DNA from: Dimorphilus gyrociliatus
Lineage: Eukaryota > Animalia > Annelida
Reading direction: 5' to 3'
Assembly (NCBI GenBank): GCA_904063045.1
Contig: CAJFCJ010000018.1
Location: forward strand, 682,001 to 746,000
DNA length: 64,000 nt
Part shown: one piece after another, positions 3,301 through 7,901 of the stretch
Numbering within the stretch: position 1 is the first letter of the stretch
Layout: each line of letters starts with the position of its first letter
Notes under the pieces: model-generated
Told to the model about the DNA's origin: nothing
What the model saw: only the letters and a program-made list of their open reading frames with translations
Databases searched by the model: none
Position numbers and translations under genes: made by a program

Positions 3301-6034
3301 TCTTCTACTATTTTTAGATCAACTAGTGAGACCGAAAATCAACAGGCACAGTTCTCCTTGAGTGAACTTGATCATTTAAAATCAGAAATTCTGGACAAAA
3401 AGGTTTTTATATTACTAAGTAAAGATCTAAGTAAAGATACATTTATCGAAAGTATCGAATACGCTGGCAGTTTGAAAAATATGAAATTGAATTAATTAAT
3501 TTATTGATACGTCTTGAATAATTGTAAACTTATAGAATTCTTCCGATATTTATTTATCTCATGCTAAGTAAAGTTGTAGCTTACTCCGACAACGTATTCA
3601 CCGTCGCTAAACGCATATTTAATCAAAGATTATTATTCATAAGAAATAAGGAATTATTAAATATTGATTTCGAATTATAGCAATCAAGTGGTCATTTATT
3701 AAGTTATCATATAGCTGCAATTGTTTTTTCGCTTAAAATAAATTGTTTTTCTATTAATTTGTTACTAAAAAATTTGTGATAATTTTTATAGAAGCTCTCT
3801 GAAACAACGGAAAAAGAAAATGCCGACTTGAAGGAAAAAGTGGAACAGTTGAAAGAAAAGTTAGAAGAAAGTCTATTAAACACCGTAGGCAACCTTTTTT
3901 CTTACTAATAATATATAACAAATACTATTAGATTATCTTTGAACTAGATTTTACATTACGAATGACTTTCGATTAGATATAGGATAAGTTAGGATATTTA
4001 AATATCAGATAAATTATGTCAATTTGTAACAAATTATTGCGAAAGTTAATTACTAATAATACTTTGACGCCCGGGCAGAAAATGGCAAACGAATCGAATA
4101 AGAAATTGGAGAATATATGTGAAACGTTAGAGCAGAAGATAAGCGCGTTGAACTTTCAGGTTAGCACTCAACAGTTGGAAACGGAGAGAAACCTACAGGT
4201 AAAGGTCATTTGAACAAACCTAAATATTGTTTAAACCAAAAATTAACCTAATAGTAGGTGTCACTAGCTATTTACATATATATTTTATATATATTTGTTT
4301 GCCCAAACCCAGACTGTAACTGAATCTAAAACTGCTCTGCATTTAATGAAACAAAAGTATAATAATCAAGAAGAACTTATTGAGAGTCAACAATCTGAAT
4401 TAGAATCAATTGGACAACAACTTACCAAAGAACAAGAAGAAAGAACAAAAGTTGAAATAAAATTGAAAGAAGATCGTAAAACGTTGACAGACGAGTGCAA
4501 GTTATTAAAGAGAGAGTTAGCGAAAACTTGCGATAGATTGGAAGAAGAGTCAAAAACATTTTATGAATACAAAAAACAAAAACAACAGAAGGAGGAAGAG
4601 TTGCAGGAGGAATTGAAATTGGCAAGGGAAAGTTTGGAGATTTTGGAAGCCGATCATAATTTATTAAAGGATAGTCTAGTGAAAATGATAAGGTAAGTTA
4701 CCCATTCTTTCATAACTTTTTGCAGTAGCCGATAAAAACAAATATAATTTAATAAAATTACAGAGACAAAGCTGATTTATGGGCTGAGAATAATGCTCTA
4801 AAAACAAGAGAGAGTTGTAGATCAATATCTGGTTGGGTAGACGATTCTGAAGCTACAGAGTGCTATTCGTGTAAAACTTCTTTTTCATTAACTTTCCGCA
4901 GAGTTAGTTAAGTACAATTTTTATGATAATATACTTGTTAAAAAGCAGAAATAGTCATAAACTATTTTATTCCCTTATAAATACAGCATCATTGCCGTAT
5001 TTGCTTACGCATATTCTGCAAGAATTGCGCCAATAATCTTATCAGCTCCCCAGATAATTGCAAGTGAGTAAAATGATCTGAATAATACAAATTTCTGTTT
5101 GTATTACCCTTAAAAGAATTTGAATAATACTTCTTTTGACAATTAGTAATAAAATTCGAGTTTGCGACCTTTGTTTCTCTCTTCAAAAGGAAATCGATAC
5201 AAGCAATCTTCTGCAGTTAGTAAAACATGTTTTATAGAATTATTTTTTTGGTGAATTGCTGAATTGATTGAATGAAAATAGTTTTCGTCTATAGGAATCA
5301 CATCCCGGAGGAGTCGAATTTCGACGTGATCAGTGAGGAAGAAGTAAGAGAGTCCTTAGACGAGTCTCGTGAAGTTGATAAATATGGGTTAGTTTTATCT
5401 ATATATTTGCTTTTATTATTATTCAATTTTTATTCTTCCTAAATATTTTTAAATAACTTTTGTTTCTCTTATCTGAAAATTCTAGAGGACGAGTTATAAA
5501 TAAAAATGATATAATCAATGGAAAAGCCGCTTTTCATGAGAGAACGATATCTCCAAAACAAGTTGTAAATTTTCCGATATTAATTGATAGTGGAGGCGTC
5601 AGTTTATCATGGTCTTTTAAAACCAAACCGAAAAATATTACCTTTGGTATAACGTATTATAAAAGTGCTGATATGACCGAAAGTGGCGATGAAGAAATTT
5701 TATTACAACTTGACAGCGTTCCGTCTCACAAGGACAACGTAAATGGCTCTATTGAGGCTCATGAACCGGGGGTCTATGTTCTAATTTTTGATAATACAAT
5801 TTCTAAGTAAGTTAATTAAGAATCCATAAGCTCTACTATTCACCTAAGAAAACAATCTAATCTATTGTGATCCGAATAGGTTTTTGGATCATATATTGTA
5901 AACCTCTTTTCTTACAGTTAACGATCCTTTAGTTGCGTTAATTCTTTTGCTCATCAAACAGATTAACACAGAAGATATTAACTCTCGAACTGAAGATTAC
6001 GGTTGAAACTCAAACGAAAAGCATCCTTACGTGA
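301..6034 (+). CDS. FYCO1: FYVE and coiled-coil domain-containing protein 1 (RUN - coiled coil - FYVE - LIR - GOLD), multi-exon
   Basis: ATG at 301 ([10 protein letters not shown]...). RUN-like exons include [21 protein letters not shown] and [14 protein letters not shown]. Long coiled-coil exons lie at 1691-4693. FYVE residues [16 protein letters not shown]|HHCRIC..C..C..RVCDLC lie at about 4830-5180, a LIR (FDVISEEE) at 5320 and a GOLD domain at about 5480-5805. The last exon 5962-6034 gives [29 protein letters not shown]. Junction phases were checked for most introns. Confidence 0.9.
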
Positions 6035-6156
6035 TTAACTCTAGAACTGCTTTCTTCATTTTATTTGTTCTATTAGTATATAATACATGTCGTGTTTTAT
6101 ATTCAAAACCAAATTGTCGACGAGTTCGTGAAGACACAACACCAAAGTATATAATA

Positions 6157-6628
6157 CTATGATTCGTCCGCGCTTCCATAAATAGGTGTCAAACGTAAGT
6201 CAGGTCTAAAAGAACAGACAGAAAATTAAAGGTGAAGGAAAAATGAAAAGGTCAAATTTATCTTTCATCTTTTTAATTCGAAGTAATAAATAAAACCTAC
6301 CCGAAGCATTCGTAAAAAGGTAGGTCGGGTAATCTGTAGCACGAAATTCCATTTTCACCCCTAATGATTTCTTGATTCACATACCCACCTAATGAAAATA
6401 AAATTGAAAGAAAAATTCAAACATATCCATTAATCTTTGAAAAATAGATTAATGACAAATATAAGGAAAATATGCTTCAAAAGAATATTTTATAAAACAA
6501 AGTATATACAAACTTCTTTTTCCAAATCTTAAGGGACGAAAAACTTGCGATTTCTTGCTTGCATTATGCGGAGTAAAGCAGCAAATTAAAACGGAGAGGA
6601 AGAGGAAAAATACGAAAGTTTTGTTCAT
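6157..6628 (-). CDS. Luqin/RYamide-type neuropeptide precursor, 83 aa, 3 exons (6628-6514, 6388-6301, 6205-6157)
   Basis: Spliced translation: MNKTFVFFLFLSVLICCFTPHNASKKSQVFRPLRFGKRSGYVNQEIIRGENGISCYRLPDLPFYECFGPDLRLTPIYGSADES*. It has a hydrophobic signal peptide, RF-G-KR amidation/cleavage site and a C-x10-C pair. Both GT-AG introns (125 and 95 bp) are phase-consistent. Below the 60-aa ORF-track cutoff. Confidence 0.8.
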
Positions 6629-6656
6629 GTTCCTGCTCGGAGAAATAAGGAGGAAA

Positions 6657-6826
6657 TAACAAAGATCTTACGGCTCGCATCTTTTATAATAGCGGAGAGG
6701 ATGCATAAATTTAAGCGTCAATGGGAAAATTTATGCGGGCGTTTTTATTACAGACGTTTCTTCTTTATTTTCGTCTATTATTATCCAGATTTATCCACTA
6801 AAAATATTCTATATTAAGTGACGTCA
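6657..6826 (-). promoter_or_regulatory. Core promoter of the neuropeptide gene: TATAAAA (6688-6682), Inr-like TTATTTC about 31 nt downstream, half-CRE TGACG (6720-6716), full CRE TGACGTCA (6819-6826)
   Basis: Motifs read directly from the sequence, with canonical TATA-Inr spacing. CREs are common in neuropeptide promoters. Function is inferred. Confidence 0.5.
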
Positions 6827-7397
6827 GAGACATATTTATTTCGTGGGCGACTGAAAATCTAAATATTGATTCTCATCCCAAAAATTCATGTATTGGCTAC
6901 ATATACAAGTGCTTAGGCTTATAAATCTTACAAAAATGAAATAATACTGTTGACTTATCACTCGTATAGCTTTTCCATTTTTATGACAAGCCAAAATATA
7001 TTTATAGTAACAAAAGAGAACAAAAAAAAGAACACCTGTGTTGTACAACGTAAATTATCTGTATTTAAGTTTTATAAACCAAGTTTTTTAGCTGCTCTTT
7101 CAAACCTACCTTTCGTTCTTTTTCGCCCCGCAGCGAAAATACGAAATGGAGCGTTTACTCTGTTGGACATAAGCCTATAATTTTTTCGCAACGAGTGTTA
7201 ATTATAAAGCTTGTGATACATTCGATACGAATCCGTTTAATTAAAGGAACTAGGATAGTATCATTGTTAAGTGTTACATAGATAGATATCGAACCGTAGA
7301 GAAAAAAATTATAGAGGTATAGTTTTATTTCTCTATAACTAGGACTTGTTTATGCCTTTTATTATTAAAGCGTGACGATAAACAATACGACAAAAAG

Positions 7398-7452: not shown

Positions 7453-7901
7453 ATGAAAGGTAAAAAGGAATCAAGTTTTTCAAATGAACTATCTTCTTCG
7501 TAAAGTATAGGTGTCGCCATACATATATATATATATACGTTGTAGCTTATAGTATTTGCTATATATATATATACTGCATAATAATTTATATATCTGTATA
7601 TATTTAAATATTTATGTCTAGCATATTCAATAGATGTCGCCATTGAGCTCGAATATTTAGTTAAATTTCTTGTTCTTTTTTTTCTTTAGTTTTTATTTGG
7701 TGCATTGTTCTCCTGGTTTGCTTAACTAGCGTAGAAGGGGCGAAAGCATTCTCAGAATCAGTTTTACCCAAATCACTTTTGGAGAAATACAGGCAGTTGG
7801 TAGAAATAGCGGATTGCAAAAGTGAGGAATGCAAAGCGGCTAGTGCCGCTATTGTAGAATGGTTAAAGGAAAATGGCTATGAATGTCCTAATACTTGGTA
7901 G
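7453..7901 (+). CDS. Small secreted protein, 72 aa, 2 exons (7453-7459, 7690-7901), function unknown
   Basis: ATG AAA G|gtaaaa...tttctttag|TT TTT ATT TGG gives MKVFIWCIVLLVCLTSVEGAKAFSESVLPKSLLEKYRQLVEIADCKSEECKAASAAIVEWLKENGYECPNTW*. It has a typical signal peptide and a TATA+Inr directly upstream. Not in the ORF track. Confidence 0.75.

Follow-up and report, generated by a model that had tools for sequence, protein, structure and literature searches.

A spliced neuropeptide precursor gene, probably of the luqin type, with a divergent predicted FRPLRF-amide in the annelid Dimorphilus gyrociliatus

The locus and its transcripts

On the minus strand of a 64-kb stretch of the Dimorphilus gyrociliatus genome (64,000 nucleotides, referred to here as the window; 33% GC), we identified a small three-exon gene encoding a precursor of 83 residues. 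A TATA box and a palindromic cAMP-response element (CRE) lie upstream of the gene, and a second gene converges on its 3′ end from the plus strand. The features of the locus are listed below, with coordinates counted from the first nucleotide of the window.

6628..6157, minus strand: coding sequence of the peptide gene, three exons, 83-residue precursor
6514..6628, minus strand: coding part of exon 1, 115 nt, MNKTFVFFLFLSVLICCFTPHNASKKSQVFRPLRFGKR plus 1 nt; ends in phase 1
6560..6628, minus strand: signal peptide, residues 1-23, with an MNK n-region, a hydrophobic core and a TPHNA c-region (by inspection)
6515..6559, minus strand: peptide cassette SKKSQVFRPLRF-G-KR, directly 3′ of the signal peptide and the sole such cassette in the precursor
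6389..6513, minus strand: intron 1, 125 nt, GT..AG, phase 1, directly 3′ of the KR codons
6301..6388, minus strand: exon 2, 88 nt, (S)GYVNQEIIRGENGISCYRLPDLPFYECF(G), comprising the spacer and the Cys motif
6306..6341, minus strand: Cys-x10-Cys motif CYRLPDLPFYEC, residues 55-66, within exon 2
6206..6300, minus strand: intron 2, 95 nt, GT..AG, phase 2, donor CGG/GTAGGT, acceptor CTTTTAG/A
6157..6205, minus strand: coding part of exon 3, 49 nt, (G)PDLRLTPIYGSADES and the stop codon at 6159-6157
6040..6156, minus strand: 3′ UTR, end approximate (from contig coverage), with an AATAAA polyadenylation signal at 6065-6060
5962..6034, plus strand: last coding exon of the convergent neighbour, with its stop at 6032-6034
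6681..6688, minus strand: TATA box TATAAAAG (read from the sequence)
6819..6826, no strand assigned: palindromic CRE TGACGTCA, approximately 130 nt upstream of the TATA box

The sequence reads as the first-pass annotation had claimed: three exons are separated by two short introns with GT..AG borders, and the exon phases are consistent across the gene (1, then 2). Exon 1 contains the start codon, the signal peptide and the peptide cassette, and its ATG at 6628 is the first in-frame start downstream of a stop codon. Intron 1 opens with the donor AGAA/GTTTGT and closes with the acceptor TTCATTAG/GT, the AG of which occupies 6390-6389. The order proposed for the product, namely the signal peptide, the cassette followed by G-KR, a spacer and C-x10-C, is present in full in the 83 residues.

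Is the gene transcribed and spliced in this way? The RNA evidence consisted of the assembled contigs of four public runs (X1, X2, X5 and X17) placed on positions 5950-6850; such contigs are no reliable guide to expression level or to transcript ends. In X2, a marine metatranscriptome, a 329-nt contig comprises 6637-6512, 6386-6301 and 6205-6089. A 4142-nt contig of X17 has joints at 6205/6301 and 6386/6512, the latter cut being movable by 2 nt to 6388/6514, and both joints have GT..AG borders on the minus strand. The X5 contigs, which come from a relative about 95% alike, are spliced at the same two joints, and in X1, a coral metatranscriptome, coverage is confined to 6538-6715. The exact joints predicted from the DNA, 6514/6388 and 6301/6205, were found in the RNA-derived contigs of X2 and X17 as well as in those of the X5 relative, so that the spliced form is present in three independent studies, with zero depth in the intron bins in all. 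No exon-skipped form of the gene was seen among the run contigs on 5950-6850. The peptide gene is real, expressed and spliced as predicted.

The neighbouring gene on the plus strand (5460-6034) has a weak match to GOLD_2 (E 0.0026, below the Pfam cut-off). Its apparent stop at 5808-5810 is not its end: an intron at 5807-5961, with GT..AG borders on the plus strand, is removed by splicing from 5806 to 5962, and this joint is contained in the long X17 and X5 contigs. The last exon of the neighbour ends 26 nt from the AATAAA of the peptide gene, and the 3′ ends of the two genes overlap; therefore, strand-blind public contigs merge the peptide gene with its neighbour.

Both of the upstream elements that had been claimed were located, the TATA box at 6688-6681 and the CRE at 6819-6826. 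The full CRE, TGACGTCA, is present as a single copy in the window, against 0.37 copies expected from shuffles, and we infer that it would be functional. CREB-type, activity-dependent transcription is found in many neuropeptide genes, and by analogy the combination of a CRE and a TATA box suggests that the peptide gene might be transcribed in the same manner. The contigs of X2 and X5 start at 6637 and 6634, respectively, which is consistent with a transcription start shortly downstream of the TATA box. A half CRE (TGACG) is also present at 6716-6720 on the minus strand, approximately 30 nt upstream of the TATA box.

Several contigs extend further upstream. Upstream of exon 1, the X17 contig continues without splicing across the TATA box and the CRE and past 6850, with 139 further contig bases; the X1 contig reaches 6715, and a low-depth X5 contig lies at 6753-6850. 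These contigs indicate that some transcripts begin well upstream of the TATA box, and such starts would reflect either a distal promoter or read-through. An out-of-frame upstream ORF of 38 codons, with its ATG at 6680, would be contained in the transcripts that start upstream. On the far side of this region, a gene for a small secreted protein (7453-7901, plus strand) is arranged divergently from the peptide gene, their start codons lying approximately 800 nt apart, and the two genes may share a bidirectional control region.

The predicted precursor and its products

The hydrophobic core of the signal peptide comprises 15 residues with a mean Kyte-Doolittle value of 2.79, and cleavage would be expected after Ala23 or earlier. 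The cassette that follows ends in ...LRF-G-KR, which would give the peptide a C-terminal Arg plus an aromatic residue and, judging from the sequence, an amide. In a six-frame translation of the window, RFG[KR]R occurs twice, and the other copy lies behind two stop codons. The precursor tail consists of 45 residues, and its only two cysteines stand 10 residues apart.

How would such a precursor be processed? The signal peptide would be removed around the Ala23-Ser24 bond, prohormone convertases would cut at Lys37-Arg38 and possibly at Lys25-Lys26, a carboxypeptidase would trim the basic residues from the cut peptide, and peptidylglycine alpha-amidating monooxygenase would convert Gly36 into a C-terminal amide. 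We propose this route because the Gly-Lys-Arg and Lys-Lys sites are canonical. The predicted products are SQVFRPLRF-NH2 (1147.661 Da) and/or SKKSQVFRPLRF-NH2 (1490.883 Da). A disulfide-bridged C-terminal peptide of 45 residues would also be released, as the counterpart of the proline-rich mature peptide of Aplysia, and the target of the amidated peptide would be the luqin/RYamide-type rhodopsin-beta GPCR of the species.

The precursor was also compared with that of the X5 relative. Exactly three differences were itemised in exon 1, namely a synonymous change at H21, the replacement N22Y and a synonymous change at A23; none falls in the 45 nt that encode SKKSQVFRPLRFGKR, which leaves the peptide cassette unchanged at the nucleotide level. 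The other itemised changes in X5 are the replacements S39N, G68R and D81E and synonymous changes at G49, S54 and P69; in X2 a single synonymous change, at R57, falls within the Cys loop. Among the itemised codons, 5 changes are synonymous and 4 are replacements, the sites numbering 52 synonymous and 197 non-synonymous. Differences closer than 30 nt to the end of an aligned piece were not itemised, so these counts leave out three differences located in exon 2 and five located in exon 3 or the UTR, and for the same reason the X5 comparison does not reach the later half of the Cys loop. The itemised codons point to purifying selection as the probable regime on the gene. As a separate observation, an N-glycosylation sequon where the signal peptide ends (Asn22-Ala-Ser, codon 22 at 6563-6565, minus strand) is absent from X5, which has Tyr22, and this sequon is probably unused.

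Could the transcript encode no signalling peptide at all, being that of a small secreted protein or a non-functional one in which RFGKR and the Cys pair are incidental? A short protein without database relatives would be compatible with this. Nevertheless, the gene is canonically spliced in three studies, it is preceded by a TATA box and by the only full CRE in the window, a relative with differences at approximately 5% of positions has the same cassette, and the layout of signal peptide, dibasic site, peptide and Gly-Lys-Arg is complete. In view of these features, we regard an incidental origin as very improbable.

Database searches and comparison with luqins

The genome paper calls the neuropeptide complement of D. 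gyrociliatus canonical (PMC7854359). The published FASTA list for the species includes 'RYamide' DgyrP9439, NKY, NPY/F 1-5 and FMRFamide 1-2, but luqin is not among its entries, and the strings RPLRF, CYRLPD and MNKTFVF are all absent from it (PMC7854359). A word-based protein search with region 1-40 of the 59-aa frame of exon 1 found no protein of 32-103 aa sharing three 5-residue words, which implies that the gene has no close relative of this size in the collection and that no public gene model of 32-103 residues encodes it. Pfam searches with exons 1 and 2 separately, both very short queries, returned only signal-peptide noise (ETRAMP and ATP-synt_8, below the cut-offs), and a JGI metagenome scan with the 59-aa frame gave 599 pattern matches, of which 0 were confirmed. 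FRPLRF is absent from the searchable literature and the string WRPQGRFG from its main texts; RPLRF-amide occurs there only as the nematode peptide FLP-21, GLGPRPLRF-amide (PMC5333901), in agreement with the ending that the first-pass annotation had ascribed to FLP-21.

A language-model neighbour search with exon 1 returned only clusters of neuropeptide and peptide-hormone precursors (PrRP, PDH, gastrin/CCK, GnRH, spexin, DH31 and galanin), with scores of 0.80-0.85 that lie under the counting level of 0.9 and serve as leads only. These neighbours support assignment to the general class of peptide precursors, and PrRP/sNPF is kept as a weak lead.

To which family might the gene belong? In luqin precursors, the peptide adjoins the signal peptide and two Cys stand 10 residues apart (PMC7041311; LURY-1 paper, PMC5576490), and luqin-type peptides end C-terminally in RF-, RY- or RW-amide (PMC7041311). 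In annelids and molluscs the luqin ending is WRPQGRF-amide (PMC7041311), so that the description of luqin traits from which the annotation had started agrees with this source. The D. gyrociliatus gene has a signal peptide (by inspection), one N-terminal cassette followed by Gly and a dibasic site, a C-terminal Arg plus aromatic residue, and C-x10-C. The spiralian core WRPQGRF, which is typical of the clade and not family-wide, is absent from the precursor, the core being FRPLRF: Arg-Pro and Arg-Phe are retained, whereas Phe stands in place of Trp and Leu in place of Gln-Gly. Both Trp and Gln-Gly are nearly invariant in the luqins of molluscs, annelids, brachiopods, nemerteans and free-living flatworms (PMC7041311; Thiel et al. 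2021). The core aromatic-R-P-x-R-F-amide is nearest to the spiralian WRPQGRF-amide, from which it is probably derived by the changes W to F and QG to L, with the loss of one residue.

Within the same phylum, luqins are known from Capitella teleta (QFAWRPQGRF-NH2) and Platynereis dumerilii (WRPQGRF-NH2), and the Platynereis luqin receptor has been deorphanised (PMC7041311). In their N-terminal parts, these annelid luqins resemble the D. gyrociliatus gene in having one short RF-amide beside the signal peptide, followed by G-K-R, and an aromatic-Arg-Pro core; they differ in the core itself (WRPQGRF versus FRPLRF), and an extra upstream Lys-Lys is present in D. gyrociliatus. The luqins of Malacobdella grossa, other nemerteans and brachiopods share the entire layout of signal peptide, peptide, GKR, spacer and C-x10-C. 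In contrast to D. gyrociliatus, they carry QWRPQGRF-amide and a basic tail after the second Cys, and their spacer comprises approximately 40-60 residues as against 16. The luqin precursor of Aplysia californica (APSWRPQGRF-NH2 plus PRMP) likewise combines an N-terminal amidated peptide with a C-terminal peptide bearing two Cys 10 residues apart, although the latter has 76 residues in Aplysia and 45 in D. gyrociliatus. An Aplysia transcript that skips one exon is read in a shifted frame and lacks the Cys part (PMC7041311); similarly, the Cys motif of D. gyrociliatus lies in the middle exon (88 nt), and its skipping would shift the frame to give ...GKR-NLTYV-stop.

The surroundings of the two cysteines can also be compared. 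Brachiopod and nemertean luqin precursors share the pattern hydrophobic-C-[LIV]-[KRQ]-x7-Y-x-C-[ILFM] (Thiel et al. 2021 supplement), and the corresponding stretch of the D. gyrociliatus gene is S-C-Y-R-x7-Y-E-C-F, with Tyr at position +1 after the first Cys versus Leu, Ile or Val in the published luqins. The closest published motif is that of M. grossa, ENGYICVRQPETDLYRCL versus ENGISCYRLPDLPFYECF here, with six identities (E, N, G, R, P and Y) in register plus the two Cys. In a permutation test against six published 18-residue luqin motifs, with the Cys columns ignored and the maximum over the six taken, P was 2-6e-5 for the span from 5 residues before the first Cys to 1 after the second, a span picked after the match had been seen; with the test restricted to the 10 loop residues, P was 0.003-0.006. 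The motif scored 30, versus a best score of 10 among 34 other stop-free C-x10-C 18-mers in the window. This score of 30 was obtained against M. grossa; M. grossa scores 26 against other nemerteans, brachiopod-nemertean comparisons give -7 to 15, and the D. gyrociliatus motif scores near zero against the other five published motifs.

It might be argued that the gene is a lineage-specific RFamide precursor, either new or drawn from another RFamide family, that has converged on the luqin layout. The word search, Pfam and the metagenome scan yielded no homologue, the peptide core is unlike that of every published luqin, and the similarity of the Cys motif is borne by the one comparison with M. grossa. 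Convergence has to be set, however, against a C-x10-C in the context ENG..C.R.P....Y.C that is improbable by chance (P 0.003 to 2e-5), against a core that starts with the aromatic-Arg-Pro hallmark of luqins, and against the catalogue of the species, from which luqin is otherwise missing though widespread in lophotrochozoans. We consider convergence unlikely. In our judgement the gene is probably the luqin-type (luqin/RYamide family) precursor of D. gyrociliatus, an ortholog with a derived FRPLRF-amide core that the published catalogue has overlooked. Homology to luqin rests on the layout and on short motifs, because the sequence searches returned no relative.

Other RF-amide systems and the meaning of the gene

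The ending RPLRF-amide suggests a different assignment, in which the peptide would be an sNPF/PrRP- or NPY/NPF-type ligand, acting like FLP-21 or arthropod sNPF (xRLRF-amide) on a receptor of the sNPF/NPY type. The last five residues of FLP-21 are identical to those of the D. gyrociliatus peptide, the nearest language-model clusters are vertebrate PrRP precursors (0.85 and 0.83, under 0.9), and PrRP precursors likewise place a single peptide beside the signal peptide (PMC7314547). However, the precursor design and gene structure of the FLP-21/sNPF/PrRP types differ from those found here. First, protostome sNPF precursors are multi-copy, whereas the present gene is single-copy. Second, the species already has an sNPF-type gene, 'RYamide' DgyrP9439, which encodes several copies and lacks a Cys motif, the annelid 'RYamide' gene being the sNPF-type gene (Thiel et al. 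2021); the NKY, NPY/F and sNPF slots are all filled by other D. gyrociliatus genes. Third, genes of the PrRP type are interrupted by a phase-1 intron within the peptide, and in NPY/NPF genes an intron splits the Arg codon of RF/RY (PMC7314547), whereas in D. gyrociliatus exon 1 encodes the signal peptide, the peptide and GKR without a break, and the phase-1 intron comes after KR. Moreover, the peptide has 9-12 residues here versus approximately 36 or more in NPY/NPF, and cysteines are unmentioned in the main text of PMC7314547. We judge it quite unlikely that the peptide belongs to these systems.

On gene structure, we rejected both PrRP, with no intron within the peptide, and NPY/NPF, with the Arg34 codon uninterrupted in exon 1 and a far shorter peptide. 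Elevenin/L11 was also rejected, since its two Cys are 8 residues apart and form part of the peptide (Thiel et al. 2021 supplement).

The first-pass annotation had left open whether the gene encodes a strongly diverged luqin or a precursor of luqin architecture whose peptide is sNPF/PrRP-like. The former is the better supported, by the splice joints, the Cys flanks, the gap in the catalogue and the introns, and the latter is less supported. We also considered that the luqin system of the animal, a miniaturised annelid, might itself have been rewired: with Trp lost and the core shortened to an sNPF/FLP-21-like RPLRF-amide, the peptide would signal via, or also via, an sNPF/NKY- or NPY-type receptor, or its own receptor would have co-evolved drastically. 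Such rewiring seems to us rather improbable; if true, it would constitute a natural ligand switch between paralogous RF-amide receptor families.

We have found a previously uncatalogued, expressed neuropeptide precursor gene that is most probably a member of a known family with a divergent peptide. Luqin is one of roughly 30 ancestral bilaterian peptide systems, and the spiralian luqin WRPQGRF-amide has stayed nearly the same in lineages from molluscs to nemerteans. As a luqin-type gene, the one described here would fill a gap in the D. gyrociliatus catalogue and would show that the conserved luqin core can change, and FRPLRF-amide would offer a natural variant for asking which residues of the ligand the luqin receptor reads. 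The predicted peptides have known masses and should serve peptidomics, the deorphanisation of receptors and in situ studies in an animal whose nervous system is very small and tractable.
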